This document shows positions 17,893-61,653 of a DNA stretch of 64,000 nt, piece after piece. Position 1 is the stretch's first letter, and each line of letters opens with the position of its first letter. The notes under the pieces are model-generated. The model saw nothing but the letters and a program-made list of their open reading frames with translations. It ran no database searches and was not told where the DNA came from. Where the stretch lies: sequence record LR745208.1. One strand, 5' to 3'. Position numbers and translations under genes: made by a program.

Positions 17893-18948
17893 TTATAGGC
17901 CTAGGGCCTCGCGGACTACCTCTGGCAACGTCTGCACGTCAAAATCAGGGTCATACGACTTCACATGATGCCACAAATCCTTGGCCTTCTTCACATCATG
18001 GTCCTCAACGATGTACTCCTGCATAAGACCCCCCACCATGTAGTCATATACTGCATTAGAGAGGTAATCCCGTGGTTCCGTGTCCATGCGGGACCAGATC
18101 CGATAAGCATCTGAAAACTTACCTCTCTTCAACAGGCTGAGCACGAGATCAAACCCAGAAGCATCCCCCTCCCTTGCTTCGTCCCCCTTCTTAGCTTCAG
18201 CCTGAAATTGAGTAATCACCTTCTGAAGCTGGGCCACCAACTTGGGAGGCATGACCATGCTGGCAAGCATCCTACGAGGGGCTGCCTCCACCACATTCTT
18301 GCCCGCCATGGTGATCTGTAGACCCGCCCCGGTGACCTTGACCAACCCCTTCTTGGCCAGCCCTTGGATCAAAGGATTCTGGGCACTATAGTCCCCAAGG
18401 TGGTTCCGCTGGAAGTATTCCTTCCGGGCCTTGGGAATCAGGCTGCTCATGATCTGAAGTGCAGTGACCTCTTGCTCCGAGTGGGCATCACCCTCACCTG
18501 CGGGGAGGAGTTTCTGGAGGTTGTCCGGGTGGGCTGCAATGGTTGCGTAAACCGAATGACCCCCCTCTGTGCCAGAGATCACAGCCCCATTAAGAGGAAT
18601 TGGGTATTCCTTTCGGTCCATGTCTACCTGATTCTGTGGAGAGAAAGGATTGGCACCACCCCAAGAGCCATACTCAACCTTGGTACGCCCCGAAGTCAGA
18701 TCCACAACCGCCGTGAACCCCCGCATCCCATCCCCACCAGCCCGCTGGACCCCATAGGTGGTCTTGCCCACAACCATGATGTCCCGCTTCCCATAACCCA
18801 CTTCCTTCAAAGCGCGGATCAATGCCTGGGGCAGGCTCCTGACCTCCATGTACTGGCCAGCAGCCTCCTTGAGGAGGGGGAGGAGATGAGGCCTAAGGCT
18901 TGGATCGGAATGGGCTAGCCGAATGAGCTTGGAACGAAGGGTCGTCAT
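17893..18948 (-). CDS. putative internal head protein carrying the MTTLRSKLIRLAH leader
   Basis: N-terminal MTTLRSKLIRLAHSDPSLRPHLLPLLKEAA is shared with three other proteins in the window. Confidence 0.7.
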   Translation of the reverse strand: MTTLRSKLIRLAHSDPSLRPHLLPLLKEAAGQYMEVRSLPQALIRALKEVGYGKRDIMVVGKTTYGVQRAGGDGMRGFTAVVDLTSGRTKVEYGSWGGANPFSPQNQVDMDRKEYPIPLNGAVISGTEGGHSVYATIAAHPDNLQKLLPAGEGDAHSEQEVTALQIMSSLIPKARKEYFQRNHLGDYSAQNPLIQGLAKKGLVKVTGAGLQITMAGKNVVEAAPRRMLASMVMPPKLVAQLQKVITQFQAEAKKGDEAREGDASGFDLVLSLLKRGKFSDAYRIWSRMDTEPRDYLSNAVYDYMVGGLMQEYIVEDHDVKKAKDLWHHVKSYDPDFDVQTLPEVVREALGL

Positions 18949-19054
18949 ACCAGGGGACCTGGATAGCCCAAATAAAACAGGGCCACAAATGTGGCCCCTG
19001 GCGACGAATCCAATTGAAATGGATGCCCTTCCCTGTTACGGGACGCGCTGCGGG

Positions 19055-19570
19055 CTACTGTGGAGAGGGGATAGGGAAATCAGGGCCCTTCCTGATCCCA
19101 ACCAATAGAGGCTCCAAATCTGGGTGGGCTTGTCTCTGACATTCCTCCGCAAGGTAGGGGTACTTCTCGGCGATTGCCTCAAATATCCTGCCCCGAATCT
19201 CACGGTTGGCTGGCATCATTGACGCCCACCTTCCCGACATTTCCATTAAGGAATCCGTCGTACTTGGTCATACGATGTCGAATGAAGTTCACCTGAATCC
19301 GTTCCAGAAAAGCAGGATCACCACTCAATTTCGCAGGTTGCCAATCATAATTGGCTCGTTCCATGGCCCGGTCTTGGTGAAAGCTATTGTAGCTCTGAAT
19401 GGCCCTCCGAAGCAATTGATCCCGAGTCACCTCCCCCACTCGGATCACAACCACTTGTCTGGCTCCCCCAAGAACTTGATTACCAAAGACTTGGTCCAGC
19501 CCCGCTCAACCAACGAGGAAAAGGTGATGTGAGGCTCTCTGGGAGGCGGGGGCTCCCTACTCTTCTTCAT
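19055..19570 (-). pseudogene. fragmented conserved phage protein (three frames)
   Basis: ERGWTKSLVIKFLGEPDK (frame 1), LLRRAIQSYN...DPAFLERIQVNFIRHRMTKYD...GKVG (frame 2) and EIRGRIFEAIAEKYPYLAEECQRQ (frame 3) look like collinear parts of one protein; breaks at about 19455 and 19210. Confidence 0.55.
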
Positions 19571-19901
19571 CCCCATCTTCCCCGTCCCCATCTTCGTCAA
19601 AACAGGTAAACTTGGACAGGATCTCATCCTGAACCAATCCTGCCAGCCCAGCAACAGGCCCGGTGACACTAATCATGTGACAATCAGCATCAACCTCAAT
19701 CCCAGGACACTCAACCGCGACTGCGGCTACCCGCCTCAACAACTTGGCCGTCCCCTCCAACATCTCCGCATGAGCCAGAAATGCCTCGGAGGGTGTTGTG
19801 GTAATGGTGAGGAAAAAGCCCAAGTCATCCCCCTGCTTGAAGTAGGGGAGCTGAAGCTCATAGGTCTCAATTGTCTTGGGTGGCTTGATCTTGGTTGTCA
19901 T
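19557..19901 (-). CDS. hypothetical protein
   Basis: 114 aa, GGAGG-like SD, acidic C-terminus. Confidence 0.6.
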   Translation of the reverse strand: MTTKIKPPKTIETYELQLPYFKQGDDLGFFLTITTTPSEAFLAHAEMLEGTAKLLRRVAAVAVECPGIEVDADCHMISVTGPVAGLAGLVQDEILSKFTCFDEDGDGEDGDEEE

Positions 19902-19926
19902 GGGGAGGTTACGCCATTTGATCGAG

Positions 19927-20528
19927 TTACCTGACCCAAACTACAAAAGGCGCCCGGACCTGTAGCATAAGGCGAACCTTGGTTCGCCCCCCCACGACTG
20001 GGGCACGAGTTAAGTATTCCCCCCTGGTAGGTACTGGAATTGTAGTCTCCCACCGTCCATCCTTGGTCCGGTACCAACCGAGTGGCCTTTCAATTGCCTC
20101 GTTCCGCCGCTCAATTGAAGTCACCACAAAGGCGCTAGCCAGAATGCCTTCCGCAGTGTGTCCTCGATGGTAACTGGTCATGCCAGGATCCGGCACATCC
20201 TGCCAAATCTGCATGTCCCCAGTGTAGTTTTTGCCCAAATAGGCACACCTCCATTCCCCATTGGGTCTACCGTCCCCGCCCCACAACAAATCACGGAGCA
20301 CCCATCTTGACCGCTTCGCTGCAACTCCTCCCGCCATTGCACAACCCGTTCCCTTCGGGCCGGAGCGAATGACCACAGGGTGAATCCATATTGTTCAATG
20401 TCCCTACGTTTCCGCTCAACTATCCCATCCAGTGTCTCACCAGCATGGGGCCCAACAGGAGACCAGAAACAGATGGCCCCCCCATTGGAAAGTGGCTTTG
20501 CAGCAGGAATCAAAAGGGAGTGGGTCAT
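19927..20528 (-). pseudogene. hypothetical gene with a single frameshift at an A5 run (20228-20232)
   Basis: Starts MTHSLL with an ATGA overlap on the 1229-aa gene. ...GGVPIWAK continues as NYTGDMQIWQD only in the -1 frame. Confidence 0.55.
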
Positions 20529-23500
20529 GAAAACAAATCCAGGACCGAAGAGTCCGGGTCCTCCTGGAGAGTTACACTCTTGGGCACATCCTTGACCTTT
20601 GGGGCCCCATTCTGGCACCCATCACAATATCGGCGGGTGTTGTTCTCGGAATCGTCCCGATAGGTACTGCCACAGCCCCTACATGCCTTGCTCCTGGCCT
20701 TGTCTCGACAGGTGGGGCACCGATTCACCATCTCCCCCTCACCCAGGACAAACCCCTCCTTACACAGAATGCAGGTTCGATTCCCCGTTGTTCGGTCCGC
20801 CCGAAAGTATGACTCATCCTTGGCCTTCCCTGACCGAAACATCTTCTCCCGCCTGCCACACTCTGGAGTACAGAACTTAGAGCAATTCTTGGAGCTGAGG
20901 TCAATGAAATCCTTCCCACAATTCCGGTAGGCACACTGCTTGGTCTTCTGTTGGATTTCCTTCACCTGCTTACATGTAGGGCACTTCGTGAACCTTCCCG
21001 GCGCCTCCGTCTCCCACGGCTTATGGCAGGTCAAGCAAACAAACGTACGCGCCTGACTAACAGGTGTGATCACCCGAACAGCATCCCTCTTCTGCTTGGC
21101 CCTCTCCGCATCCACCCGAAGCTTGCAGATCCTACAACGCCTTCCCTCACGGTCGGGACCCTCTAGAGCTAGGCCACAATCCATGCAGTGGGGTCCAGCA
21201 AGCCTGCAGGGGGCACAATATCCGCCTACCAAGTCACCAGATGGTATGGAACCCCCACACTTTTGACATCTGGATATGACCGGGACAAGTATCCCTTCAG
21301 GGACTCCCCCCTCGGATGGTACCAGCTCTGATGGTACAGGTGGGGCGGGCATGGTGTGTCCCACAGTGGGGATTCCAGTATTGACCCCGGCCCCAATGGA
21401 TACCCAACACAACACCAATTCATGATTGTCTGGTTGGGTAGGAGTTGGCATTGCATATTTAAGGATCTCTCTGGGGTTCCCCAACCCAGCTTGAGCAACC
21501 AGTCGTTTTGTGTCCTCAATGAGAGGGTACTGGACTTTCTCAATAAAGAAGTCGTCCACATTCAACACCAACCAGCCCCCCTGTTTGAGGCCATAAACTG
21601 CCTTCTGAATTACCGGACCCCAGAACCCCTTGAGCCACTTCTCATAGGTAGGGTATCGGACACTGGACTGGGTAGGCTCCGTCCCATAGACTTCCCGGCA
21701 CCAATATGGTGGGGATGTTAGGACCATATCCAAGCTCTGTGGAGTCACATCAAAATCCTCAGCGGGTAGATTGTGGAGTTCCACCTGTGCCCCAATCCCA
21801 TAGGAATTGACCCAGTCCCGTAAATGGTGAAGTCTGGTAAATGTTTCCGACTGTGGCTCACAGGCAATGTATTTGGGCATTGACTTGGACATCGTGGACC
21901 CAAGCAATCTCCCCCCATACCCTGCGCAGGGGTCCCATAAGGTTCCCCCTGGAGGGCAGAACCGATCTACTAGCACCTTTGCTGCTGAGGGACGGAAGTT
22001 ATACACCCCAGATCGCCAATAGAATCTCAGCCTTCCCCTAAGGTTAGCAGCGGTGGGCATGTCCCCCGAGGACAAAATCGAGGCTAATACCTTTCGAAGC
22101 ATACCCTCATCCTGAAACAGGTCCCAAGGACTCATTGTGGAGCCATACGACCGTGCCTTCCAAATATGAGTGGAGAATGCCTGACAGGATGCCTGCCCCA
22201 CTTGTCTTCTCTTTAGACAACCATCCTGAAGGATATGCCTCTCCTCCAAATCCCGGAGAATGTGGAGTTCCTCAGGCCTCGCAACATGATACGGGAATCC
22301 CTGTTTTCTCCAATGGGATTCCAACTCGACAAGCAGCCCTGCCTGATCCGTTTCAGATAGGGATTTCCACATCTGGCACCTATCTTTAACAGCATCCCAG
22401 AAAGATAACTTTTCCGGGGCTCCTTTATCCACTTGTGGAAGCATCCCCATGGGATGATGGTGTCCGGGGAGCTTGTGAAGCATATCCGGAGTCACAAACT
22501 CTCTCACCAACGCAAAGAACTTGTCGGCGGTTGCCGCCCGGATTGTAAGTTGTGGGCAAGAGGAGTCGATGCTACTTGGTTTCAAGTAGGTGTCCAGCCC
22601 AAACCTCTCCCCCACCCACCGCACCACATCCTCAGCTTGGTCCTTGGAGATATCCCCCAGAGCAAATGATGGGTTGTCTCCCAGGTGCCCATCGTCAAAG
22701 TACCAGTAAGCCAGAGATCTAGGTGTCAAAGACCGGATTACATGCTCAGGAAACACCTTCACCCCATCGGGGTAGAACAACTCCCGCATCTCCTTCAGCC
22801 AAACATGTTGAACCGTTAGAAACCCAAACGTAAAGGCTAGGGTACCATTGGGCATCTTCTTTTCCCCGTAGAAGAGGGGAAGGGCGTGGGGGGTCAAAAT
22901 GCTGTGGATCCTCCTAAGGTAGGTGAGCTGGTAATGAGTATGGGTGAGCCTACACTTGCCCCTCTCAGTCACATGAGCATCCCCAAGTAATGTGCCAATT
23001 AGAGTCTCCTTCTGCTCCTCGGTCCACTCCGTATGCTTCGTTGCTCGATCTGACTTCGAGATTGACCTGATTCCCCACCCCAATCTTCGATTGCGTATTG
23101 TTGGTTTCGTCACCCCATACAGTTTTGCAATGGTCCGGTCACCTGCCTGTTGGTATAAGTCTGCCAGGATTACCGGAGTCAACTCCTCTACGGGAAGGCA
23201 CCCAACGGGGGCACCCACCCGATGATGAGCAGACGGAATCCCCCACTTCTTTCGGTGGTAGGCAATTGCCACCCCACTCACCCCATAGAGTGCCCCAATC
23301 TCAATATCCGTTTTGGTGGCATACAAATCCCGGAGAGTTTCTTCAGTTAATCCTCGCCGGGCAGGTGCCCCGTGATTTGTGGGGGATACCTTTGTGACCA
23401 CCCCATACAAACGCTGTGCCTCTATTTGAGTGATAGGGCTGGCGACCACAGATGTGTCTGGCATTCTCCCCAACATACAGGAGGGTACAGCGTTTTGTAA

Positions 23501-24214
23501 TGTGCCTAGGAAATGGTTGGCTTGCTCCGGAAATTGAATGTGTGCCCCACTTGAGTTCTCCTGAAACTGTGGGTACAACCCAAGCTTATGACAAGCCTGA
23601 CTCAACACGTTCATTGTGGACTGATCGGGGCTTTTGTCAACGGAAATTCTCGGATCCCCTGTTAATGTGATGCCTCCCCTATCCAAGAACCACACGGCCA
23701 GAGACATTGGGTCCAACTCCAAGGAGGGAGGCACTACCAATACCCCCGCTGGGTAGAACTGATCGTAGTAGGGTCTCAACTGTGGGCAACCCCGTGTCGC
23801 CATCTGAAAACTACAATATAACCTGCCATTTTTCTTTGACCTGACTTCGTGAACCTCTTGCTTCACATATGGCCCCAGCATTTCCGCCTTCCACCGAATA
23901 TAACCCTCTTCGTTAATGGGATGACGCACCACCAACTTCGCCCCCCCACCCAGGGGGGTCATGTACCCATTTCCGAGCAGGCACCCGATCAATATGCCGT
24001 GTTGCTCAGGGGTTATCGGAGGCAGAACCCCCCCTGCTCGCTCTGCCCTTGTCAAAGTTGGGATTCCCCACCTCTTTCGCAGTTTCCCTACCTGGGGCTG
24101 AGTAAGCCCATACCGATTGGCAATGGCCACCTCGGAAAGACCCTGTGTCACATAGAGATCGGATAGGACATCCGCACTGAGTTGGAGAGGTTGGGGAAGT
24201 GATTCGGTAGTCAT
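20525..24214 (-). CDS. HTH x3 + LAGLIDADG x2 + amino-methyltransferase (SPPY, likely m4C) + Cys-rich Zn-finger fusion
   Basis: LIGCLLGNG/SLAVWFLDRG; LIGTLLGDA/SLAYWYFDDG; WDPCAGYGG (motif I); LTSPPYW (motif IV); more than eight CxxC pairs at the C-terminus. Confidence 0.8.
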   Translation of the reverse strand: MTTESLPQPLQLSADVLSDLYVTQGLSEVAIANRYGLTQPQVGKLRKRWGIPTLTRAERAGGVLPPITPEQHGILIGCLLGNGYMTPLGGGAKLVVRHPINEEGYIRWKAEMLGPYVKQEVHEVRSKKNGRLYCSFQMATRGCPQLRPYYDQFYPAGVLVVPPSLELDPMSLAVWFLDRGGITLTGDPRISVDKSPDQSTMNVLSQACHKLGLYPQFQENSSGAHIQFPEQANHFLGTLQNAVPSCMLGRMPDTSVVASPITQIEAQRLYGVVTKVSPTNHGAPARRGLTEETLRDLYATKTDIEIGALYGVSGVAIAYHRKKWGIPSAHHRVGAPVGCLPVEELTPVILADLYQQAGDRTIAKLYGVTKPTIRNRRLGWGIRSISKSDRATKHTEWTEEQKETLIGTLLGDAHVTERGKCRLTHTHYQLTYLRRIHSILTPHALPLFYGEKKMPNGTLAFTFGFLTVQHVWLKEMRELFYPDGVKVFPEHVIRSLTPRSLAYWYFDDGHLGDNPSFALGDISKDQAEDVVRWVGERFGLDTYLKPSSIDSSCPQLTIRAATADKFFALVREFVTPDMLHKLPGHHHPMGMLPQVDKGAPEKLSFWDAVKDRCQMWKSLSETDQAGLLVELESHWRKQGFPYHVARPEELHILRDLEERHILQDGCLKRRQVGQASCQAFSTHIWKARSYGSTMSPWDLFQDEGMLRKVLASILSSGDMPTAANLRGRLRFYWRSGVYNFRPSAAKVLVDRFCPPGGTLWDPCAGYGGRLLGSTMSKSMPKYIACEPQSETFTRLHHLRDWVNSYGIGAQVELHNLPAEDFDVTPQSLDMVLTSPPYWCREVYGTEPTQSSVRYPTYEKWLKGFWGPVIQKAVYGLKQGGWLVLNVDDFFIEKVQYPLIEDTKRLVAQAGLGNPREILKYAMPTPTQPDNHELVLCWVSIGAGVNTGIPTVGHTMPAPPVPSELVPSEGGVPEGILVPVISRCQKCGGSIPSGDLVGGYCAPCRLAGPHCMDCGLALEGPDREGRRCRICKLRVDAERAKQKRDAVRVITPVSQARTFVCLTCHKPWETEAPGRFTKCPTCKQVKEIQQKTKQCAYRNCGKDFIDLSSKNCSKFCTPECGRREKMFRSGKAKDESYFRADRTTGNRTCILCKEGFVLGEGEMVNRCPTCRDKARSKACRGCGSTYRDDSENNTRRYCDGCQNGAPKVKDVPKSVTLQEDPDSSVLDLFS

Positions 24215-24417: not shown

Positions 24418-25293
24418 TCAGCGAGTGATCGTGAGGCGGGTCAGACCACGGGGGTTGTAAGCTCCGATACCTAGGTTTTCAAACACCGAGAATCCGATGG
24501 TGCGTGCCTTGGGATCGTCTGCTGACAAAACTGTCAATTCCGTGCGTACGGGAATACGTCCAAACATTTCGGGCTCACAGGTACAATAGATTGTACCTGC
24601 TGGCACGAGACGTGAGGTGATGACCTGAGCGCCCCAGAGTGTCGCCTGGAGACCAGTCTTGAGCAGGGTTGCCTGAGACTCGATATCCAGAATGTCGCGG
24701 CCGAACTTACGGACGTCCGCGTAGTCACGCGCGTTCATGAACACGCGGGCAACCCGAAGGTCGTGGCGTTCAATGAGCGAGAATGCGTCGGCGAGGACCG
24801 CACCATTGACTGGTGCAACCACGGGCACGTCAGGGTTCGTCCCGCCAGGAAGCGAGTCGAAGCCGTTGACTGCAATGGCGTCCATGACTGCGAAGACGCG
24901 TTCGTCTTCTGCGGCCTGGATCATCGCGCGGGCCAGATCCTGGGCGCGCTCGATCAGATCGAAACGACGCTCCTTGATCTGGGTCAGAGGAATCTCGGGG
25001 TTCGATGCAATCTCGAACAGCGGGAAGATTACCCTGCGTGGCTTGGTGATTGCGAGAATGTTCTCACCCTCTTCACCGACCACGTATGCGGTCACATCCG
25101 GGTCCTTGTCATAGATGGGCAGTGCCCCATCTGGCAGTTGCTCCACGAGGAAGGTCTTGCGACCAACGCTCATGTAGTCACGGCGTGTGCGGAGGGGCTG
25201 CGTCATCGACGCGGCGAGCTTGTTACGGCCAGCGGCGGTCTTGATGTAGTCCGAAATGATCTTCTGCTTGAGTGCGTTGTCTACGGTTGTCAT
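24418..25293 (-). CDS. major capsid protein, HK97/encapsulin-like fold
   Basis: 291 aa with highly biased codons; E-loop-like VVGEEGE...RRVIFPLFEIASNPEIPL; spine helix DLIERAQDLARAMIQAAEDERVF; A-domain RVFMNARDY...LWGAQVITSRLVP; located downstream of the protease and scaffold. Confidence 0.85.
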   Translation of the reverse strand: MTTVDNALKQKIISDYIKTAAGRNKLAASMTQPLRTRRDYMSVGRKTFLVEQLPDGALPIYDKDPDVTAYVVGEEGENILAITKPRRVIFPLFEIASNPEIPLTQIKERRFDLIERAQDLARAMIQAAEDERVFAVMDAIAVNGFDSLPGGTNPDVPVVAPVNGAVLADAFSLIERHDLRVARVFMNARDYADVRKFGRDILDIESQATLLKTGLQATLWGAQVITSRLVPAGTIYCTCEPEMFGRIPVRTELTVLSADDPKARTIGFSVFENLGIGAYNPRGLTRLTITR

Positions 25294-25304: not shown

Positions 25305-25991
25305 TCAGATCCTCTGGTCAAAGACGATTTCAGACATCGCCGAATCAGGTGCGACCTTGAGGATACCAATGGTCGTTGCCGCAACGGCACCGGCATTGAT
25401 GCTCTCTAGCGTGTTGAAACCACCGCCGACGTCGACGATGATCCAAGCTGCGCCGTTCCACACGTACGTTGGCATGAGCCAGCCGTTTTGTGATGCTGCG
25501 AGCTTCAGACCCGCGAGGTATGTGAGTGCGGTACCCGCCGCAACACCACCCGTGGTGACGAGGAGCTGGGTCTCATAGAGACGGCTGCCGTACGTGCCCA
25601 TGGCGCTGACATAGGGACCCTTGCCAGACGCCGCCGCTGGAAGGTTCTCGTAAGCATTGCCCGAGGCGTTGTTGATGAACATACCCACTGGGAGGATATG
25701 GGTCGCAGCTACTGGAGCTACGAGACCTGCCGCAAGGTGCGGTCCGCCAACGGAGTTGTTACCTGCGTCTGGGCGCGCAAACGCCACAGAGCCAGAGAGC
25801 ACACCGAGAACTTCGGTAAGTGCGCCGGGCGAGGTAGATACTGTTCCGACTGTCGATACGATTGGCGGATTGGTCTGCGTGAAAGCATCGGCCGAGAGAA
25901 CGCTGATGGTGTTACGAACACCAACATGCAGAATCCTCAGTGCCGAAGAACTCTCCGTAAAACCACCGCTCGCCTGTCCAAGCAAAGCCAT
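25305..25991 (-). CDS. capsid decoration/cement protein
   Basis: Lies immediately upstream of the MCP; Gly/Ala-rich beta protein (PVGMFINNA...GKGPYV...IGILKVAP); AGGAG SD. Confidence 0.65.
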   Translation of the reverse strand: MALLGQASGGFTESSSALRILHVGVRNTISVLSADAFTQTNPPIVSTVGTVSTSPGALTEVLGVLSGSVAFARPDAGNNSVGGPHLAAGLVAPVAATHILPVGMFINNASGNAYENLPAAASGKGPYVSAMGTYGSRLYETQLLVTTGGVAAGTALTYLAGLKLAASQNGWLMPTYVWNGAAWIIVDVGGGFNTLESINAGAVAATTIGILKVAPDSAMSEIVFDQRI

Positions 25992-26170: not shown

Positions 26171-26575
26171 CTAGCCCTGTGCTTTGACCCACTTGTCCAA
26201 CTTAGCCAACCCATCCTGTGGGTCCTTGAACTTGGTTTTGCGCATCTTCTCGGTCTTGTGGCTTGTCACAATCTGTAGGGTCATGTCACTGAAGTGAAAT
26301 ATGAACTTTGCATGCTTGGAGTTTTCCAGGATTCCATTGGCCCATGAGTCCCTGGGCTCAAACCCCAGGACCCCAGATACAGAGGGCTGATCGCCAAGCT
26401 TGCTAACCGATGCCTTGACTACTGGTAGCTTGACTTTCGATTCAATCAGGTCCTTGAGAGTTTCTGCATCCTTCTTGATGTCATCCCCTGCTTCCTTGAG
26501 TAGTGGGAGCAACTGGGGCCGGAGAGCCGGGTTCTCATGTGCTAGGCGGATGAGTTTGGAACGCAGGGTGGTCAT
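26171..26575 (-). CDS. putative internal head protein carrying the MTTLRSKLIRLAH leader
   Basis: MTTLRSKLIRLAHENPALRPQLLPLLKEAG. Confidence 0.7.
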   Translation of the reverse strand: MTTLRSKLIRLAHENPALRPQLLPLLKEAGDDIKKDAETLKDLIESKVKLPVVKASVSKLGDQPSVSGVLGFEPRDSWANGILENSKHAKFIFHFSDMTLQIVTSHKTEKMRKTKFKDPQDGLAKLDKWVKAQG

Positions 26576-26705: not shown

Positions 26706-27974
26706 TCAGCCGAATGCCTTGGAGATGTCTGGAGCCGATTCCCAGAGCTTCGACAGGTCGCTCACTTCAGACGAGGAGGCAACCTTGGCCACTTGGCCCA
26801 GGGTCTTCACGCCATTCGATGGGCTACGGGGCTGTGGGCGAAGAGCTGATGCCTTCTTGGCTTCCTTGGGCTCCTCTTCCTTGACTTCCTCTTCCTCGTC
26901 TGCCTTCTTCTCTTCCTTCTCGGCCTTTTCAGCCTTCTCGTCATTGATCTTCTGAAGTGCTGGGGGAAGCTCGCCTGCTGCCTTGGAACCGTAGATCGCA
27001 GACATGTCATCGTCCGACATCCCGTCATCCGAGTCCATGAACCCCATTGGGTCCTCCGCGTCGTCCATCAGCACGTCATCGGCAACCACTGGAGCCTCTT
27101 CCTCAGCGAGCATCGATGCAAGCATCGCCTCTTCCTCGGGGTCTAGCTCTCCAGCAAAGTAGCCTGGATCGTTCTGACCGGCCTTCTTCTTGCCCTCTTC
27201 CTTGTCGGCCTCTGGCTCATCGCCATCGGGCTCATCCTCGCCAGCCTTCTTGCCCTCTTCCTTGTCGGCCTCTGGCTTCTCGTCCTTCTTGGCCTCTTCC
27301 TCTTCGGCCTTCTTTGCCCAGAACGCTGCCTGCTTGGCCCAATAGGCTGCCTTCTTGGCTGCCTTGTCGTCTTCCTTGGGCTCTTCAGCCTCTGGCTCCT
27401 CTTCCGACTTCTTGGCCTCCTTCTTGGGCTCCTCAGCCTTTGGCTCTTCCTTGGGCTCCTCTTCCGACTTCTTGGCTTCCTTCTTGGCATCTTCCTTGGG
27501 CTCTTCAGCCTTTGGCTCTTCCTTCTCTTCTGTCTCCGCTAGGCGACGAAGAGCTGCCTGAATCTGGCGATCCGTCAGGTTCATGAGATCAAGTGCCTGA
27601 TCCTCAAGTGCGGTTGGGCTGGCCTTCCTGCCAAGCATTGCGGACGCAATGCGAATGCACTGTGCAGCCTTTGCTTCCAGGGCTGCACGAAGCTGGCGGG
27701 ACGCCTGCTTGCCTGCCCCACCTGGGAAGTAGTGCGCGGGGTCAGTAGCTGGGTGCCCCTGGGGCTCCGAGGTACCTGGAAGGGCTGGAGCCGCCCCATT
27801 TGGGTATGGGCCTGCCTTGGGGTCTTCTGCCCAAGCCGATGTATCACCATTCTCGTAGGCATCCGCCTCGGGATCTGGATACGCAGCTGGGTGAACACTT
27901 GGCTCCTGATAGCCTGGGGTTGCTGGGGGTGCTGATGCACCGCGGGAATTCCATGTGAGTCGGCGTCGAGACAT
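26706..27974 (-). CDS. capsid scaffold protein
   Basis: Very Glu/Lys/Ala-rich, with EEPK and EPEADKEEGKK repeats; lies between the protease and the capsid genes. Confidence 0.75.
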   Translation of the reverse strand: MSRRRLTWNSRGASAPPATPGYQEPSVHPAAYPDPEADAYENGDTSAWAEDPKAGPYPNGAAPALPGTSEPQGHPATDPAHYFPGGAGKQASRQLRAALEAKAAQCIRIASAMLGRKASPTALEDQALDLMNLTDRQIQAALRRLAETEEKEEPKAEEPKEDAKKEAKKSEEEPKEEPKAEEPKKEAKKSEEEPEAEEPKEDDKAAKKAAYWAKQAAFWAKKAEEEEAKKDEKPEADKEEGKKAGEDEPDGDEPEADKEEGKKKAGQNDPGYFAGELDPEEEAMLASMLAEEEAPVVADDVLMDDAEDPMGFMDSDDGMSDDDMSAIYGSKAAGELPPALQKINDEKAEKAEKEEKKADEEEEVKEEEPKEAKKASALRPQPRSPSNGVKTLGQVAKVASSSEVSDLSKLWESAPDISKAFG

Positions 27975-27988: not shown

Positions 27989-29413
27989 TTATTTTTCTCG
28001 GCTTGACGCCGACTTGTGAGCAGAAAGAAGGGATGCCAGACGGATTAGCGTTCTGGCTTCCGATGAGTTGGGTTTCCTACCCAACAGCTCCCCACACTTG
28101 TGGAGGAAGCCGTCAAGGCCACCTGACAAACTGGTTGCCTCAATTTGTAGTGCCACTCTATAGACAGAACGTGGAACAAAAATGCCAAGTTCGTGATTTA
28201 GGGTAGCCACCCGGTCAATAACCTCAGCGTCTTGCTTGGAGGTACTGACGATTTCCCTCAGGGCAGCCATGTACATTCTCGAACTGGCCTGCTTGACAAG
28301 GGTGTCGTTGAGGGCAGCCGAGGATTCCGGGATACTCTTGGCGGGAGGGGAAACCTTATCCCTCAACCGCTTACGAACGTTGTCTAGGATGGAATTGGTA
28401 ACCTCATCCTCCAAGTCCTGGAAGGGGGAGGCTGGTTCTTTGGGTTCGACTGGGACATCTTCTGGAGGTGCCTCCATATCCATCTCGTCGGCTACCACAA
28501 ATGATGACTTGATTGGGGTCTGGTGAGCCGCCTTCAAGTAGGCATCCGAGGGGATCTCTCTAGCAGGCAGGGAAATGACATCATGGATCCTACGGGCCGT
28601 CTTGCCCTTATCATTCTTATCCAGGGTCACGATGTTTCGAGCAACGGCTCCCTTGAAGGCTGGTACCTCTACCCAAGAGGCTTCGATGAAGGTAACACCT
28701 CCCTTGTCAAGTGAGGTATCCCCACAAAGCTCCGCTGTACGATGGCGATGTCCCTGCTCATCATAAAAAGTGTTACCTTTCATATACTTAATGCAGTCGC
28801 ACATTTCTGTCTCGTCCGCGGCCCAATGCCCGCATTTTGTGCACGAGCTTCCGTCGATGCTGCAACCCATGGATAACGTTGACATTTTCCCGGATTCAAT
28901 GTCCTTAATGAGCTCTGTATGCTTCCGATTGGTAGCCACAAGAATGTCAATGTAGATGCTTGGCCCAATGTCTCTAGCAACAGCATCTAGGATGCGCCCC
29001 TTCGAGTGTTCTTCCATTTGACAGTGCTCCAGGAAATTGTGAGCACCAATGAACGTAGGGTACGATGCCAGGAGAACTGGACGAGACCAGCTATCCAAAT
29101 TTGAGTTTATGAATTGGTCACACTCAGGTTTGATCCTGAAGGATGACGTCTTGCGGACAACCTTCTTCCCCTCAAAGGTGCCGGATCCAGTCTTCACTCC
29201 GGGGACCGGGTAAGTATCCACCGAGGATACAATTGTGCAATGTGCCAAGGCAAACTTGGAGGGATCGAAATCCTCATGCAAAATCTTGGATGCTTGGGTA
29301 ACCAAACTCCGATCAAGCCTAGACTGTCCACCGGCAATACGGATATTGTCCCAGCCCCCATCATTAAGGCGGGTAGGGGTGCCCTGAGCATAGGCGTATT
29401 TCATCATAGGCAT
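27989..29413 (-). CDS. prohead maturation protease
   Basis: NSNLDSW...FIGAHNFLEH...GRILDAV...LSMGC...FIEASWVEVPAFKGA resembles assemblin/HK97-type proteases; CTKC...CDC Zn motif; gene position upstream of the scaffold. Confidence 0.7.
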   Translation of the reverse strand: MPMMKYAYAQGTPTRLNDGGWDNIRIAGGQSRLDRSLVTQASKILHEDFDPSKFALAHCTIVSSVDTYPVPGVKTGSGTFEGKKVVRKTSSFRIKPECDQFINSNLDSWSRPVLLASYPTFIGAHNFLEHCQMEEHSKGRILDAVARDIGPSIYIDILVATNRKHTELIKDIESGKMSTLSMGCSIDGSSCTKCGHWAADETEMCDCIKYMKGNTFYDEQGHRHRTAELCGDTSLDKGGVTFIEASWVEVPAFKGAVARNIVTLDKNDKGKTARRIHDVISLPAREIPSDAYLKAAHQTPIKSSFVVADEMDMEAPPEDVPVEPKEPASPFQDLEDEVTNSILDNVRKRLRDKVSPPAKSIPESSAALNDTLVKQASSRMYMAALREIVSTSKQDAEVIDRVATLNHELGIFVPRSVYRVALQIEATSLSGGLDGFLHKCGELLGRKPNSSEARTLIRLASLLSAHKSASSREK

Positions 29414-30104: not shown

Positions 30105-30117
30105 ATAGGCAGGCTAG
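30105..30117 (-). promoter_or_regulatory. ATAG-N5-CTAG candidate late promoter
   Basis: Upstream of the 30081 start (head operon). Confidence 0.45.
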
Positions 30118-30947
30118 TCCCCCTCCTGAAGGGCAAACAGTGTGTCAGCTAGGTCTGGGTCGTCCGCAGCCCGGAGGAACAGGTCTAGGTACTTCTTCGT
30201 TTGATAGGCGGCTGCCTTCATTTCCTTCTCAGGGATCAGACCGAATCCCATTCGTTGGTTATAGGCACGACGAGATTCAGACATATGTCGTTTAGCCTCC
30301 TCAGAAGCTTTCATCCCACGGCGAGCCTCGGATATTTTCCTCCGATTCTCCTCTGTTCTGGGTTGCTTGTGTTTGGTAACAACTCCCTGTGCCCTACGTC
30401 CCTCAAACAAGGTTATCCTCGATCCCGATATTTTTCTCTTAGACTCCTCAGTGTGGCCCTTGCCCAGATGGGATACCCGACTTTTCTCTTTAGCCTCCTC
30501 AGTACAAGGAGGTCCTTTCCTTCCAGTAAGGGTCTTTGACACCTTTAGCCGGGTATCAAGAGGCAGGGGCTTTCCTCGTCTCAGTACTGCAAGCTTTTCC
30601 CGGGTCTCCTTTGAAACCTCACAGGAACCGTCCGGATTGACTTTTCTCAGGTTGTAGCCATGGTCCCTGTCGTGTGCTTGATACAGGTCACAGTAATGGC
30701 CCTCTCGCCTGGAAAGATCCTTACTATCGGCCACCATCTCCAGGATTTCAAACCCGAAAGCCTTTTCTCCATACCTTACCCAAGCGGATTGGAGGTGGAA
30801 ATTGTAATGATATCCACCATTTAGGCTCTCTCTGTGATGTTTCCATCGAAACGGGATGTCTTTGGATTGACCCACATAGGTCTTACCAGAATCCTTGTGG
30901 AAGATCCGATAAATTCCCTGAATTGGGTTCTTGCTACCCCTACTCAC
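30114..30947 (-). CDS. GIY-YIG homing endonuclease with NUMOD3 repeats
   Basis: QGIYRIFHKDSGKTYVGQS, RWKHH, GYN; repeated SEETREK-like motifs; GTG start at 30947 inferred. Confidence 0.85.
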   Translation of the reverse strand: MSRGSKNPIQGIYRIFHKDSGKTYVGQSKDIPFRWKHHRESLNGGYHYNFHLQSAWVRYGEKAFGFEILEMVADSKDLSRREGHYCDLYQAHDRDHGYNLRKVNPDGSCEVSKETREKLAVLRRGKPLPLDTRLKVSKTLTGRKGPPCTEEAKEKSRVSHLGKGHTEESKRKISGSRITLFEGRRAQGVVTKHKQPRTEENRRKISEARRGMKASEEAKRHMSESRRAYNQRMGFGLIPEKEMKAAAYQTKKYLDLFLRAADDPDLADTLFALQEGD

Positions 30948-30951
30948 AGGC

Positions 30952-31533
30952 TCACACCACCAAATCACAATCACGTATCAAAAAAAGACAGCTTGGGCAG
31001 ACCCATAGTTTCACGGATTTCCCCTGTTCCCTCTTATATGAGACTCTTCTTAGCAGATTTTCCTCACATCTGGGACAGCAGAAATCTCCGGTCTCAATCT
31101 CTTCCCGGGTAGGCTTGTACTGCCTGTCCTTGGATGCCCAATAGACAGCCTGCTTGATATAGGCTGAAGCCACCCTATGGGCCTTGTCCCGAATCCCGGG
31201 CCCTCCAGATACAGATACGGTTCCTGCCCCCCCTGGCACATTCGTAATGGCAATGTCTATGGCTGCCTCCTCATTCTTTTCGTGACTGATCACCAGTTCT
31301 TCTACTGGGTACCTAGCAGTCCCGTAGGGGAAAACCAAATCTACCATGCCGATGGCTGGCCAGACCGCTACAACAGTTCCCCCATTGGCGTCACTTCCTC
31401 CGATGATGGGGAATGCACAGTCACCAATGTGGAAAGCCGTAGCCCGGCCTTGATAATCAACGAAGCTCTTCTTACGAGTAGTCACTGTGGAAAACCCTTC
31501 TATGGCCCGATGGGATCCACCAAGGCCACCCAC
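30952..31533 (-). CDS. SH3-like + zinc-ribbon protein
   Basis: GTVVAVWPAIGMVDLVF; CPRC...CPSC; the true start may be about 16 codons downstream. Confidence 0.65.
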   Translation of the reverse strand: MGGLGGSHRAIEGFSTVTTRKKSFVDYQGRATAFHIGDCAFPIIGGSDANGGTVVAVWPAIGMVDLVFPYGTARYPVEELVISHEKNEEAAIDIAITNVPGGAGTVSVSGGPGIRDKAHRVASAYIKQAVYWASKDRQYKPTREEIETGDFCCPRCEENLLRRVSYKREQGKSVKLWVCPSCLFLIRDCDLVV

Positions 31534-33709: not shown

Positions 33710-33713
33710 TGGT

Positions 33714-34118
33714 TTAGCCACCACCACAAATGTGGTATGCTCGACGGTGGTACCGCTCCGCCATGCTGGCCAGTCGTGACTCCTCTGTCATTTCGCGGAG
33801 ATCAAAACACTCCCCAGCCATGTCTTTACGGATCTCCCGCAGATCCTGTGCAATCTCCAGAGGGTCCTCTTCATCAATCCACCGGCTCTGTAAGTCCCTG
33901 ACCACATCTGCCTTGCCCTCAATGATGTCCAGCCACTTGCCCCCCGTATCCAGGGACATGGCCTCCTCGAATAAGGCTTCAATGGTAAGGAAATGCTTCC
34001 GAATGCAGTCCGAGCACCTTTTGCGCTCATTGTTGAGGTGATCCTCTAACAGGGCTGACTGCTTGCAGATTTCCCTCAGGTTATAGAGAGGATGCATAAT
34101 TGGGAGGAGATCCGGCAT
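33714..34118 (-). CDS. conserved Cys/His helical protein
   Basis: LYNLREICKQSALLEDHL...RCSDCIRKHFLTIEALFEEA. Confidence 0.7.
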   Translation of the reverse strand: MPDLLPIMHPLYNLREICKQSALLEDHLNNERKRCSDCIRKHFLTIEALFEEAMSLDTGGKWLDIIEGKADVVRDLQSRWIDEEDPLEIAQDLREIRKDMAGECFDLREMTEESRLASMAERYHRRAYHICGGG

Positions 34119-34171: not shown

Positions 34172-35866
34172 CTAAAATCTACCCTCTTCTTCTTTCTTGG
34201 GGGTGTACTTGACCCCAAGTGTGGTTGCAATTTTCTGGACTGCGTCGCTGTTCTCAGCCAGAGATTGGCCCAAAGCCCCGTAGAGGGCCCGAAGGATCTC
34301 ATTGAAGCTGGAGTCATTCAGGGTGAACAGATCTCGCTTGAGCTTCTCGGCTGTGGTGTGTGGGTCCAGGTTCAAAAGTTCCAGGATGACATCAATATCC
34401 AGGGAGCCCTTGTTGTACAGGTTGAACAGAGCATCGAAGGTGTCCGCATTGTCCCGAAGGGCAAGTCTGGTGAAGGACATGGTTGGGCAGATGACCACTT
34501 CATTCTCGTCATCATCCAACTCAATGAACCCCATTCGGCGACACATTGGCTCCAGGATGTTCTGTTCCACAAAATCCTGAAGCACCTCCCTCAGGAGCAT
34601 GTACCGGGTATTGATGACCTCCAAGTTAATTCGGTCACCCGAGTAGCTGGACTCCCCAGACAGGAGAGACTCCGTCACCCCCAGGCCTGCGTACATTTGC
34701 CTGTCGGTCATTTCGTATTCCGACGAGAGTTCCAGCAACCGTCCCTGGCTGCCCATCTCCTCCCAATGAACCTCAAAATTCGTGACTATAGAGTAGTCTG
34801 GATCCTGGAGGGCCAACTCGACCTGATCCCTCAGGGCGTCCACGTCTGTGGATGACCCATCCTCCACCCACACAAGGCGGATAGGGGTCATATGCCTATC
34901 GGAGATCATACTCTGACTCTGGCGTAACTTATCGCGATACACGAGCACTCGGAGGCATCTCTCCAGAATGGAGTGCCCACGGGGCTCATACTGTGACTTC
35001 TTGCGTGCCAAGTAGGACACGAAGCTACCCGCATTGGGGTCCGTGTTCAGAGGGATGTTGCTCCCACCACGAATGGCATTCACGACACCCTCTGGCATGG
35101 ACTTGACGATCCTGGCTGCCTGCTCGTCTCCCCCGTCCGCCTTCTGGACAATGTCCCGGGTCTTGCTGTCTGGAATGAGCTCTATGAGCTTTTCATCCGT
35201 AAATGGGAAGCTCTCCATGTGAATTTGCTCCGGAGGCAGAACCCGAATGGCTGTCCATCCCTTGTAATTCTTCCGGAGCCACTTTTCCATACGGGCATTG
35301 GCGTCCTCCCGACGCACACTCTGTTCTACGGGATTGCCATCCTCATCAAGCACCCTATGTAGCTCGTGTGTGACACTCTCGGGCATGTCCGGGGAGGCGT
35401 CCTCACAGAAGATGTTAACCTCTCCCAGGAGGTTGTAGTCATGGACAACCTCAATGAGACGGTGCAAAAACCCTATCTTCTTGGACCATCTAGTACAGAA
35501 GTCCAAGGACCTCTTAGCCAACTCCTGATTTTTGGCCTTAGGCATCCCGAGTCTAACCTTGGAAAGTGGCAGCTCAGTATGGAGATCAATTGCCTGTCCT
35601 ACGAAGGGGTCGGTCTCATAGAAGAATCGGAAATAATTGCGCTTTTCGTCTTGAGACTGTGGTAGCTCCAGGAAGTCAGTGGATAGCTCTGGCGAGTAGA
35701 AGTTCCCCGCCGTAGACCCGCTGGAGGAACCCGTGCTGGGGAAGGCTACCTTCGAAATCATCGCATGCTTGCGGACCTTGGAGGGCAGGCCCACCTGTAC
35801 CGAGCGAGATTTCTTGGGGGGAAGCCTCTTTACTTCCTTAGCACCCTCATTTTTTGTATCAGCCAT
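34172..35866 (-). CDS. portal protein
   Basis: 564 aa; FFYETDPFVGQAIDLHTELPLS, YNLLGE, PRGHSILERCLRVL...KLRQSQ pattern; position in the packaging module. Confidence 0.8.
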   Translation of the reverse strand: MADTKNEGAKEVKRLPPKKSRSVQVGLPSKVRKHAMISKVAFPSTGSSSGSTAGNFYSPELSTDFLELPQSQDEKRNYFRFFYETDPFVGQAIDLHTELPLSKVRLGMPKAKNQELAKRSLDFCTRWSKKIGFLHRLIEVVHDYNLLGEVNIFCEDASPDMPESVTHELHRVLDEDGNPVEQSVRREDANARMEKWLRKNYKGWTAIRVLPPEQIHMESFPFTDEKLIELIPDSKTRDIVQKADGGDEQAARIVKSMPEGVVNAIRGGSNIPLNTDPNAGSFVSYLARKKSQYEPRGHSILERCLRVLVYRDKLRQSQSMISDRHMTPIRLVWVEDGSSTDVDALRDQVELALQDPDYSIVTNFEVHWEEMGSQGRLLELSSEYEMTDRQMYAGLGVTESLLSGESSYSGDRINLEVINTRYMLLREVLQDFVEQNILEPMCRRMGFIELDDDENEVVICPTMSFTRLALRDNADTFDALFNLYNKGSLDIDVILELLNLDPHTTAEKLKRDLFTLNDSSFNEILRALYGALGQSLAENSDAVQKIATTLGVKYTPKKEEEGRF

Positions 35867-39849: not shown

Positions 39850-39850
39850 G

Positions 39851-55406: not shown

Positions 55407-55420
55407 TTGGGAGGAAATAG

Positions 55421-56679: not shown

Positions 56680-56682
56680 GGC

Positions 56683-58106: not shown

Positions 58107-58113
58107 TACTGGG

Positions 58114-59250: not shown

Positions 59251-59501
59251 TTGGCTTTTCTCCTGTCCCTGGGGTCTCAGACCCTTGGGTTTTTTCTATT
59301 CCAGAGACACCATACCGACGAAGTTGGCAAGAGACAAGAAAAATCGTAACCAGTGGGATATCCGATGTTTTCTTCCGTGGCCATGGCCAAATAGGATGCC
59401 CCAAGAAGTTTCTAGAAGTCCCCTACACCATCTCCGGGCGGTTAGGATGTGAAATCAACTGGTGGACGATATTCCGGCTCTAGGCACACCCCGTTAGACC
59501 C

Positions 59502-61268
59502 ATGACTCAACACACCGCCCGCCAAGTCGTAGCATCTCTCCCAACCGGGATCAACCTCCAACACCTTGACGTGATGGCCCGCGCCCAATTCATGGAAGGT
59601 CTGCTGGGGGCTCCTCCCTTCTCGATCTCCGGAAAAGCTCACAGTAATGCCCAGTTGCGACAAGTAATTGGGAAGATGATGCTACGAATTGATCCAGAGA
59701 CGGATGCTACCACCAGCCCATGGGTTTCCATGGAGAGCCTGGGGCTGTATCGGACCGCCTGGGTCGCCGCCTCCAAGGCTGTAGCCAAGATGGGTCTCGA
59801 AGCGGAGGATGTTCTCCTGGCAGACATGGTCAAGGGAATTGGTCTTGCCAAAAATGGAAGCAAAACTGCGGATCTCACTCTCCAGAATGAGGTAGGTGAA
59901 GCTCTTGCTGAGACCAGTCACATTGGTAGCATCTTCTATGAAGTAGGCAAGCTCCTTCGGGCCAAGAAGAAGATGGTTCTATCGGGTGAAGTTGCCCTTG
60001 CTGAGATCCTCAACAAAATTGGCATGGCCGCTCGTCGTGAAGCAATGGACATTGGCCGCACCCTCATGCGCCGTCGCGTAATGGAGATGGAAAACATTGA
60101 GGAAATAGGTAAAGAAACCCTTGGGGATGCCGATGACATCAACGCCCCCGAGTGGGAGCAGATCATCTCTCAGGTCATGGGTAACCCGGCACACCCGGCG
60201 GCCCAAGAGTTTCTCTCTTGGTTGGTTGAACAAGCCAAGCGGATGTCTAGCCCTGTAGTGGTGGAATACTTTGAGTCTCTAGCTAGAGGGGAAGACCTTG
60301 GCTGGGGAATGGACTCGGTGATTGCTGCCCGTGTAGGAGTGAATCAGACCCACCTTTCCAATGGGCGCAAGAAGTTCATTGGGGAGATATCCAAAATCCT
60401 AACCACCCAAGGTGATGATCGGTTCCCGGAGGTTGTCAATATGATGTCGGACGCATCCTTCCTTTCTGACTTGTACCGTGGCAAAATTCATGGCCGCATG
60501 GCTCGACTCAAGAAAGCTGCTGCTGAGAAGTCCCTGCGAGGTAGGGTCATCCGTCTTGCCCATGAGAACCCAGCCCTTCGACCCCACCTCCTCCCTCTCC
60601 TCAAGCAAGCGGGGGATGTAATCCCCTTCCCAGGAACCTGGAGGGGCACTCCTGGAAGCAACCCAAACTTGGTGGAGCTACCCCGTAGCCCAATGTCTAT
60701 TGGGGAGACACTTGAAAACACCAAGGTTCGCGCACAGATGTTTGCCAATACTCTTCGGGTCACGGACCTGACCGATGCAGGTAAGCGTGGCAAAAGGGTT
60801 TCCCAATTCGCCCTCTATGACCTGGACCGAGCCAAGGTCAATCAGGAAACTGCCAGCATCTTCCAGAACCTAGTGGAAGCGACCGTTGGTGGCCATGCCA
60901 CATTCAGCACCCTCCTGCAAATGGCCAAGACTGTAGCGAACGAACAAGATGCCCTGGCCCCCAAGCTAGAGGTTTCTGCCCTTCGTGGTGTCGATGTGGC
61001 ACCAGCAGGAGTCAAGGCACTTAGAATTCAAGGGCAGTTTGTCTCAATCCGAGCAGAGCATGATGACTTCTCGGTAGAAGACACCCACGACCAGAACAAC
61101 CTGTCCACCTGCATACCAGCCATCAAAGGTGGCAAGAAGGACATCCCAGTCTTCTATCGCTGGGTCCAAGACAACCAGAGCCAGATCAAGTCCATGACCT
61201 TCCAAGAAGTCGTGGGAGCCATGCGAGGTCTTGGAATCAAATATCACCAGTACTGTGCAATGGACTGA
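59502..61268 (+). CDS. HTH/sigma-like N-terminal region fused to an internal leader motif and a C-terminal domain
   Basis: DSVIAARVGVNQTHLSNGRKK; SLRGRVIRLAHENPALRPHLLPLLKQAG at 60531-60614. Confidence 0.7.
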   Translation: MTQHTARQVVASLPTGINLQHLDVMARAQFMEGLLGAPPFSISGKAHSNAQLRQVIGKMMLRIDPETDATTSPWVSMESLGLYRTAWVAASKAVAKMGLEAEDVLLADMVKGIGLAKNGSKTADLTLQNEVGEALAETSHIGSIFYEVGKLLRAKKKMVLSGEVALAEILNKIGMAARREAMDIGRTLMRRRVMEMENIEEIGKETLGDADDINAPEWEQIISQVMGNPAHPAAQEFLSWLVEQAKRMSSPVVVEYFESLARGEDLGWGMDSVIAARVGVNQTHLSNGRKKFIGEISKILTTQGDDRFPEVVNMMSDASFLSDLYRGKIHGRMARLKKAAAEKSLRGRVIRLAHENPALRPHLLPLLKQAGDVIPFPGTWRGTPGSNPNLVELPRSPMSIGETLENTKVRAQMFANTLRVTDLTDAGKRGKRVSQFALYDLDRAKVNQETASIFQNLVEATVGGHATFSTLLQMAKTVANEQDALAPKLEVSALRGVDVAPAGVKALRIQGQFVSIRAEHDDFSVEDTHDQNNLSTCIPAIKGGKKDIPVFYRWVQDNQSQIKSMTFQEVVGAMRGLGIKYHQYCAMD

Positions 61269-61278
61269 TGAGATACCA

Positions 61279-61653
61279 ATGACAACTCTGCGGTCCAAAC
61301 TCATCCATCTAGCCCAAGAGAACCCGGCTCTCCGGCCCCAGTTGCTCCCCCTGCTCAAGGAGGCGGCACCCACTAAGGGGGTGGATGTGGCCAAGGCCAT
61401 TGAGCTTGGGGCCCTAGCAGAGAGCTATCTTAATGCCCTCCAGGCAGCACAGAAGAAGCTGAGTGTGGGACGTGACTTCTACCGTGCCTTGGAGGCATTC
61501 AAGCTCCCAGGGATGCAATCCTCTAGTAGCCCATTCTACAGCGTGGCCCTGGTCAAGGATGGTAAGCCAGAAGATGTTGGGGATGTAGATGGGTCACTGG
61601 TTAAGATGATTCACACGCTCGAACTGGCTGTGAAAGAGCTCCAGAAGGTCTGA
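61279..61653 (+). CDS. putative internal head protein carrying the MTTLRSKLIHLAQ leader
   Basis: MTTLRSKLIHLAQENPALRPQLLPLLKEAA. Confidence 0.7.
   Translation: MTTLRSKLIHLAQENPALRPQLLPLLKEAAPTKGVDVAKAIELGALAESYLNALQAAQKKLSVGRDFYRALEAFKLPGMQSSSSPFYSVALVKDGKPEDVGDVDGSLVKMIHTLELAVKELQKV

Follow-up and report, generated by a model that had tools for sequence, protein, structure and literature searches.

Proteins of a huge uncultured phage share a peptide module of ∼28 residues that seems to be an address or docking tag not described before. The module (consensus SLRSKLIRLAHENPELRPHLLPLLKEAA) was noticed in a 64,000-nt stretch of sequence record LR745208.1, hereafter the window, where it is joined to proteins that have nothing else in common. 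As described below, it can be carried at any position in a protein, is maintained by selection on the peptide itself and is shared by a whole clade of phages. Our leading, though tentative, interpretation is that it acts as a position-independent docking peptide, which would tether effectors of many kinds to a single conserved partner; the most plausible site for this partner is the procapsid interior. LR745208.1 is the complete 485,034-bp genome of a groundwater phage, and the window is identical to its positions 372001–436000; coordinates given here refer to the window unless stated otherwise. The genome appears in the supplement of Al-Shayeb et al. (2020) as GWB1_PHAGE_COMPLETE_CIR-CU-CL_55_23, curated complete, from Rifle groundwater, with Spirochaetes as the commonest best-hit phylum (10 % of genes); the three module genes that we checked in that annotation are all designated 'hypothetical protein' (PMC7162821).

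Within the window the module is present on both strands. Copies MTTLRSKLIRLAHSDPSLRPHLLPLLKEAA (18859..18948, minus strand), MTTLRSKLIRLAHENPALRPQLLPLLKEAG (26486..26575, minus strand) and MTTLRSKLIHLAQENPALRPQLLPLLKEAA (61279..61368, plus strand) form residues 1–30 of proteins of 351 amino acids (aa; 17893..18948, minus strand), 134 aa (26171..26575, minus strand) and 124 aa (61279..61653, plus strand), respectively. The remaining copy, SLRGRVIRLAHENPALRPHLLPLLKQAG (60531..60614, plus strand), is internal, constituting residues 344–371 of a 588-aa protein (59502..61268, plus strand), in which it lies between an N-domain and a C-domain. An earlier note on this DNA, made from the sequence alone, had quoted these four peptides, and its translations proved exact and correctly placed, two on each strand. 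Its count was also right for the window, where a fuzzy six-frame search revealed no further copies, but fell short for the genome: using a hidden Markov model (HMM) of the module in a six-frame scan of the whole 485,034 bp, we identified 11 copies (E-values of 1e-12 to 1e-21) and nothing besides them below E = 0.1. A model built from 259 sequences returned the same 11, with no divergent extra copies in the genome, including in the scaffold-like protein and the prohead protease considered below. Ten of the 11 begin 1–4 residues past the initiator methionine and one is internal. When the module was masked, the 11 tagged proteins were mutually unrelated (best BLASTP E = 0.09), in agreement with the earlier observation that the sequences following the module bear no resemblance to one another. 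The recurrence of the module in LR745208.1 is far in excess of chance.

Across 259 copies, nine positions are 86–100 % conserved (L4, R5, I9, L11, A12, P16, R19, L23 and P24, numbered from MTTLRSKL...), five of them hydrophobic, and three to four conserved basic residues are found at R5, R/K10, R19 and K27. Read from the sequence, the module consists of two 14-residue half-units with equal spacing, LRxxLIxLA...NPx and LRxxLLPLL. The copies within LR745208.1 share a mean identity of 80 % at the amino acid level and 72 % at the nucleotide level, whilst third codon bases at identical residues agree in only 50 % of cases and the leucine and arginine columns use four to five codons each. As synonymous sites have diverged whilst the residues were kept, selection has acted on the peptide and not on the DNA. 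For the same reasons (72 % nucleotide identity and a 50 % third-position match) we rejected a simple DNA repeat or recent duplication as the source of the similarity; a shared 5' RNA element was likewise rejected, because internal and C-terminal copies exist and conservation is seen at the codon level.

To gain insight into its structure, we modelled the 351-aa protein with AlphaFold2 using an alignment of 36 sequences. The module was predicted to form two helices, spanning residues 4–14 and 16–29, with predicted local distance difference test (pLDDT) values of 71–90, and was followed by a confident cargo domain at residues 32–222 (pLDDT mostly >90). In the AlphaFold model of a three-module protein from a related locus (L054), each module was again a helix pair, separated by linkers of pLDDT <50, with a predicted template modelling score (pTM) of 0.29. 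Judging from these models, the module would be a hairpin of helix-turn-helix type, basic and amphipathic, attached through a flexible linker, and proteins with several modules would resemble beads on a disordered string. Such a hairpin, at 28 residues, has too many conserved hydrophobic residues to bury on its own, and as such the module almost certainly binds something. The earlier note had allowed that the peptide might prove to be a known DNA-binding domain; we looked for this and found no match to a known DNA-binding family in Pfam or to a solved structure in PDB, where the best matches had E-values of at least 0.5 over 12–14 residues. Comparison with the Pfam families LRV_2 and DUF6193 gave sub-threshold scores only (13–16.5 bits against a 27-bit cut-off), and where true LRV arrays occur in module-bearing proteins (P0119 and P0098) they stand apart from the module.

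In order to determine where the module is placed within proteins, we scored the 304 copies present in the 150 best metagenomic proteins, each of which contains one to five. N-terminal copies numbered 119, internal copies 142 and C-terminal copies 43, the last of these stopping 2–4 residues past LLPLL. Single-copy proteins were mostly tagged at the N terminus (29 of 32 representatives; 69 of 86 distinct proteins from fetched loci), and multi-copy proteins were rich in lysine, glutamate and aspartate (K+E+D; median 27 %). The proposal of a specifically N-terminal signal was, therefore, not borne out, given the 142 internal and 43 C-terminal copies. Nor did its removal at a T4-type cleavage site find support: only 43 % of the 259 copies have the expected glutamate at the L-K-E position, and the C-terminal copies end before it. 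What survives of the portable tag that had been suggested is portability itself, in that the module is an autonomous unit found on unrelated cargo, with the same domain occurring both with and without it; its restriction to the N terminus does not hold.

The earlier note had also proposed a profile search of the genome and of related phages and, when run, this yielded the 11 genomic copies described above together with thousands in relatives. Among 1.84 billion representative metagenomic proteins, 2,655 clusters contained the module at E ≤1e-3, of which 262 did so at E ≤1e-10. In IMG/VR viral contigs we found 43 module loci, distributed over ∼20 contigs of 55–485 kb with several loci per contig. 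By comparison, 185,579 prokaryotic species genomes gave a single match, on a 1.3-kb contig of a metagenome-assembled genome; no plasmid in PLSDB carried the module; and among 50,697 deposited phage records it was present in LR745208.1 only, and thus in no cultured phage. The module is, accordingly, confined to viruses. Contigs bearing it encode large terminase, portal and capsid proteins close to those of LR745208.1 (for the terminase of locus L057, E = 1.5e-250), which makes the module a clade-wide property of huge uncultured phages. No description of it was found in the literature that we searched with its characteristic strings, nor does a Pfam family exist. Additionally, copies from within one genome are more alike than those from different genomes (71 % versus 65 %), a difference reached in none of 500 label permutations; as synonymous sites have diverged, this likeness is more in keeping with co-adaptation to a common partner than with gene conversion.

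The portability of the module is best seen by following individual cargo domains. In the 351-aa protein the module precedes an α/β domain of ∼190 aa (aa 35–230) and a helical C-terminal part. This domain has 36 homologous clusters and exists as an untagged stand-alone protein of 196 aa, with an N-terminal tag, and in longer proteins where the tag lies 5–12 residues upstream of it. Used in a structure search, the 351-aa model returned no significant PDB match and one unnamed viral match; its resemblance to the MotA activation domain is weak and local. For the 134-aa protein, the cargo corresponds to phrog_3308, a family of unknown function, and has ∼30 %-identical untagged homologues in Synechococcus myoviruses. 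The N-domain of the 588-aa protein recurs as a 332-aa protein with a C-terminal module (P0199), and its C-domain recurs either directly behind a module (P0146, P0078, P0194 and P0197) or untagged (P0195, P0196 and P0198); the 588-aa protein is thus a fusion, and the module seems to be the point at which such fusions arose. The gene for the 124-aa protein begins 11 nt past the stop codon of the 588-aa gene, and its cargo has no family match. Apart from phrog_3308, no Pfam or PHROG match was obtained for any of the 11 tagged proteins of LR745208.1.

Relatives provide a clearer view of what the module is attached to. In 84 tagged proteins from related loci, Pfam searches identified ART-PolyVal (3.9e-12), DUF2958 (5e-19), DUF5710 (3e-18), 2H-SAK (8e-17), pentapeptide repeats (1e-22) and DUF7007 (1e-15), as well as weak matches to RelA_SpoT and LPD1. 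A set of 114 tagged representatives additionally contained RelA_SpoT, WGR, TFIIS_M and LRV domains, with a GNAT domain in P0001. In the four proteins of the window, Pfam detected none of the ART, RelA/SpoT, 2H, pentapeptide, DUF5710 and LPD1 domains, and tagged proteins in general gave no match to MuF or DarA/B. ART, RelA/SpoT and 2H phosphoesterase domains occur in 'polyvalent' effectors, for which packaging into phage heads or transfer with conjugative DNA has been predicted, and of which the ADP-ribosyltransferase Alt of T4 is the prototype (PMC5512222). Tagged genes are also often adjacent to one another: L055 has a run of four, L038 one of five, and L057 one of six genes that together carry ten copies.

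A number of further observations were made on tagged proteins and their homologues. Two untagged genes of LR745208.1 that lie outside the window, at genome positions 19465–20316 (minus strand) and 480715–481200 (minus strand), have module-bearing homologues elsewhere. The product of one is 65 % identical to a tagged L038 protein; that of the other is a Dps-like DNA-binding protein, which in P0163 is joined through a module to the cargo domain seen in the 351-aa protein. Short motifs were also seen beside the module in relatives: CEKLPEGxMRxNC adjoins it in 10 of 150 proteins, YQDYVxRKK is located just past it, and KLPxGWTxxSVxKFW is found near it and, in P0179, within a protein annotated as DUF2958. 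The occurrence of these motifs (P0002, P0007, L043, P0010, P0016, P0165, P0172, P0176 and P0179) suggests that tagged proteins may hold a wider vocabulary of short sequence elements.

Taken together, these features led us to the docking model outlined at the outset. According to this, the module would tie a large number of effector or cargo domains, unrelated among themselves, to one conserved partner, either encoded by or common to the huge-phage clade; the most likely partner would be an internal component of the procapsid, namely the inner surface of the capsid, the portal or the core. Packaged there, tagged proteins would enter the next cell along with the DNA, and those with multiple copies would bind with higher avidity or have an internal scaffolding role. 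Cleavage by the prohead protease is possible in this scheme, but the docking model does not need it. A single conserved partner would be expected to leave the copies of one genome closer to each other than to those of other genomes, as is seen. We tentatively place the partner in the capsid because the effector-type cargo repertoire resembles that of proteins delivered with DNA; because precedents exist in the T4 targeting sequence, the hairpin of the P22 scaffold and the tags of encapsulins and microcompartments; and because head-gene neighbourhoods recur, even though they are not enriched.

Candidate partners are encoded in the head-gene cluster of the window, all on the minus strand. These are the HK97-type major capsid protein (291 aa, 24418..25293; phrog_2522, E = 2e-47), which scores 21.7 bits against Pfam Phage_capsid, under the 24.2 cut-off; the portal protein (564 aa, 34172..35866; phrog_16240, E = 1e-33); and the prohead protease (474 aa, 27989..29413; phrog_18299, E = 1.9e-10), a candidate processing enzyme or partner with no sequence match in Pfam or PDB. 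The cluster also contains the large terminase gene (37957–39876), the gene for a K/E-rich scaffold-like protein of 422 aa (26706..27974) and that for a 228-aa protein (25305–25991). As the earlier note had it, one module gene is situated in this operon, the 134-aa gene being located between the scaffold-like and major capsid protein genes; the protease gene lies ∼1.4 kb upstream of it, with the scaffold-like gene between them. Similar arrangements exist in relatives: in L027, three tagged genes lie 1.6–4.3 kb downstream of the capsid gene; in L044, a tagged gene follows the portal gene by 208 bp; and in L057, a tagged cluster is found ∼6 kb upstream of the large terminase gene.

Several observations weigh against a location in the capsid. 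The scaffold-like protein itself has no module, and the 134-aa gene is absent from the equivalent position of the head operon in L027. From the coordinates, the head cluster has two of the 11 tagged genes within a distance of ∼10 kb, where ∼0.8 would be expected, which is not above chance, and roughly three distinct head-gene contexts were seen in ∼35 viral loci. Seven of the 11 tagged genes are instead found among genes of nucleotide metabolism and replication (dNMP kinase, DNA methyltransferase, helicase and RNA ligase), and for the effector-type domains the cytoplasm would be an equally possible site of action. Furthermore, the head genes that we inspected have GGAG-type ribosome-binding sites, unlike most tagged genes, which are preceded by the motif CTAT. 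This was found at −18/−19, with no Shine–Dalgarno sequence, in six of the ten N-terminally tagged genes; in the window it precedes genes starting at 18948 (minus strand), 44499 (minus strand) and 62589 (plus strand). CTAT forms a positional peak across the genome, with 12 genes at −18 against a background of ∼1.5 per position, and its other carriers with a family match are mostly free-standing HNH endonuclease genes. The motif probably marks the promoter or start site of cassettes that are transcribed independently, which is what the tagged genes look like. We also considered whether homology of the module extends upstream of the ATG, and rejected this, as only the short CTAT motif is shared there, a genome-wide signal that is not part of the module.

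It is this evidence that brings forward the strongest of the competing explanations, which we nevertheless judge to be unlikely: that the module is a docking tag for a hub in the cytoplasm of the infected cell. This hub could be a chaperone, a compartment built by the phage, or the machinery of replication or transcription, and might be of phage or host origin. Position independence and multiple copies would suit a general short docking motif of this kind, most tagged genes of LR745208.1 reside among DNA-metabolism genes, and their upstream signals differ from those of head genes. Moreover, the cargo of the 351-aa protein has a weak similarity to the activation domain of MotA, a domain that binds sigma factor, and a Dps-like DNA-binding domain is among the fusion partners. 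In disagreement with this, however, no candidate hub emerged, and the cargo domains are typical of proteins delivered with DNA. A 2026 review of jumbo phages, which mentions no shared terminal tag, also states that proteins enter the known phage nucleus without the use of terminal signals (PMC13282480).

Distinctly less probable is that the module binds to itself, acting as a sticker through which multi-copy K/E-rich scaffolds and single-copy clients would assemble into a multi-effector complex, a condensate or a core resembling an inner body. The proteins with one to five copies spaced by charged linkers of low predicted order (median K+E+D 27 %) are consistent with such an assembly, as are the domains that are tagged at opposite ends elsewhere and joined through the tag in the 588-aa protein, and the greater likeness of copies within than between genomes. 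AlphaFold did not predict confident packing between modules (pTM 0.29, module pLDDT ∼50), although this is a weak test, and LR745208.1 contains single-copy tagged proteins only, with no multi-copy scaffold. The multi-copy K/E-rich proteins of relatives, for their part, showed no homology to the scaffold, capsid or portal of LR745208.1 except for one marginal low-complexity match.

We regard as improbable a strict N-terminal capsid-targeting sequence of the T4 type that is removed by the prohead protease. This model can point to the N-terminal location of 10 of 11 genomic copies, 69 of 86 locus proteins and 29 of 32 single-copy representatives, to the end of the consensus, L-K-E-A, which suits the L-x-E cleavage rule of T4, and to the protease gene ∼1.4 kb from the 134-aa gene. 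It fails on two defining features, because the N-terminal position is not exclusive (142 internal and 43 C-terminal copies, the latter ending 2–4 residues past LLPLL) and the cleavage residue is not conserved (glutamate in only 43 % of copies); in addition, the protease has no detectable sequence relation to characterized proteases. Least probable of all, and by our estimate very unlikely, is a nucleic-acid-binding or structural element (a basic hairpin riding on DNA, a solitary LRV/HEAT solenoid cap or a neutral joint that promotes recombination), for which the three to four conserved basic residues, the sub-threshold LRV_2 and DUF6193 matches and the fusions apparently arisen at the module might be cited, but which is at odds with the lack of significant matches to DNA-binding families or solved structures, LRV scores of 13–16 bits against a cut-off of 27, true LRV arrays that are separate from the module, and residue conservation at diverged synonymous sites, the last of these speaking against a DNA-level role only.

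Returning to docking inside the procapsid, a bolder version can be formulated, which we consider possible but rather doubtful. In this, the 28-residue peptide would be a universal label, active at any position, by which dozens of effectors in each genome (ADP-ribosyltransferases, alarmone synthetases, acetyltransferases and DNA mimics) are marked as an interchangeable payload and injected with the DNA, and would also serve as the joint at which cargo genes recombine. If true, this would constitute a modular protein-delivery system without a described counterpart in cultured phages.

A number of additional features of the head cluster and of the surroundings of tagged genes were recorded. The scaffold-like protein and its relative in L027 have in common a conserved C-terminal tail (ALRPQPR..KTLG.VAK...LSKLWESAPD) that is distinct from the module and is probably the capsid-binding end of this protein. 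The protease tail ARTLIRLASLLSAHK (27989–28060, minus strand) was evaluated as a possible half-module and rejected, since LIRLA is seen twice outside modules against ∼1.2 expected; its ARTLIRLASLL segment resembles module helix 1 at chance level only, and the L027 relative has VLVRMAKLLAL. Beside the capsid gene, a 1,229-aa open reading frame (20525–24214, minus strand) has matches to LAGLIDADG_2 (1.7e-38), a CGNR zinc finger and, weakly, an N6_N4 DNA methylase, and could represent a methyltransferase into which a homing endonuclease or intein has inserted. The region separating the portal and protease genes encodes a 508-aa protein (32201–33727, minus strand) in which HAD_SAK_1 is combined with a eukaryotic-type topoisomerase IB catalytic core (2e-26), and its gene is adjoined by that for a GIY-YIG/NUMOD3 homing endonuclease (30114–30974, minus strand). 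The portal protein has 564 aa here and ∼1,100 aa in relatives (L044:1503-4793; L057:23942-25343), and the long L057 form has a LAGLIDADG_3 match, which suggests that the longer form may carry an intein that LR745208.1 lacks. Away from the head cluster of LR745208.1, tagged genes also neighbour DHH phosphoesterase and homing-endonuclease genes and are often oriented opposite to them. Those at 14.5, 20.3 and 30.9 kb of LR745208.1 are on the minus strand amid a long run of small plus-strand genes (8–36 kb), those for dNMP kinase, DHH phosphoesterase and DNA methyltransferase among them, and look like counter-oriented inserts.

If the module is a loading or docking signal, it marks in one step a functional set among hundreds of uncharacterized genes, with eleven members here and thousands across relatives. 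It would then mean that a whole phage clade has solved cargo selection by means of a single portable peptide, and would define a large new protein-motif family that is absent from Pfam and PDB. For phages that cannot be grown in culture, using one peptide as bait would provide a simple experimental handle on the partner. Should that partner lie outside the capsid, a virus-only, multivalent, position-independent and strongly selected motif still represents new cell biology of huge phages.

A first parallel is found in phage T4, whose capsid-targeting signal has ∼10–20 residues, is strictly N-terminal and is cut at L/I-x-E. Like the module, it is a short peptide common to unrelated proteins of one phage, the internal proteins IPI–III and Alt, which it loads into the prohead for injection, and ART-type domains, as in Alt, are among the cargos of the module. 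The module differs from it in having 28 residues arranged as a predicted two-helix hairpin, in also being internal or C-terminal, in being present in up to five copies and in lacking a conserved cleavage residue. A second parallel is provided by encapsulins and bacterial microcompartments, where cargo is docked inside a shell by short helical tags, which flexible linkers join to one or other end of enzymes that are not related; in encapsulins this shell has the HK97 fold, as does the capsid protein of LR745208.1. The module likewise is a short, predicted-helical peptide on a flexible linker that is found at either terminus of unrelated cargo; the tags of these systems, however, are shorter single helices or extended peptides, are cellular and have no sequence similarity to it. 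A counterpart in shape is the C terminus of the P22 scaffolding protein, a basic helix-turn-helix of ∼30 residues that binds coat protein and can bring foreign cargo into procapsids. The predicted form of the module is the same (a basic two-helix unit of ∼30 residues, with helices at 4–14 and 16–29), although the P22 hairpin belongs to the scaffold itself, whereas here the scaffold-like protein has no module and a different conserved tail. LRV and HEAT-like repeats are also helix-turn-helix units with the pattern (L/V)R..(L/V)(I/A)..NP...L..LL; LRV repeats form tandem arrays, whereas the module is solitary, is flanked by long disordered linkers and scores below threshold. With respect to cargo, the overlap is with polyvalent and MuF-linked effectors, which include ART, RelA/SpoT, 2H phosphoesterase and LPD domains and are predicted to be delivered with invading DNA (PMC5512222). 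Polyvalent proteins assemble many such domains in a giant chain and MuF is itself a full domain, whereas in the phages described here many small genes each carry the same tag. Compared with known portable targeting and docking peptides, the module stands apart in its length, its predicted hairpin shape, its independence of position, its multivalency and its sheer spread.

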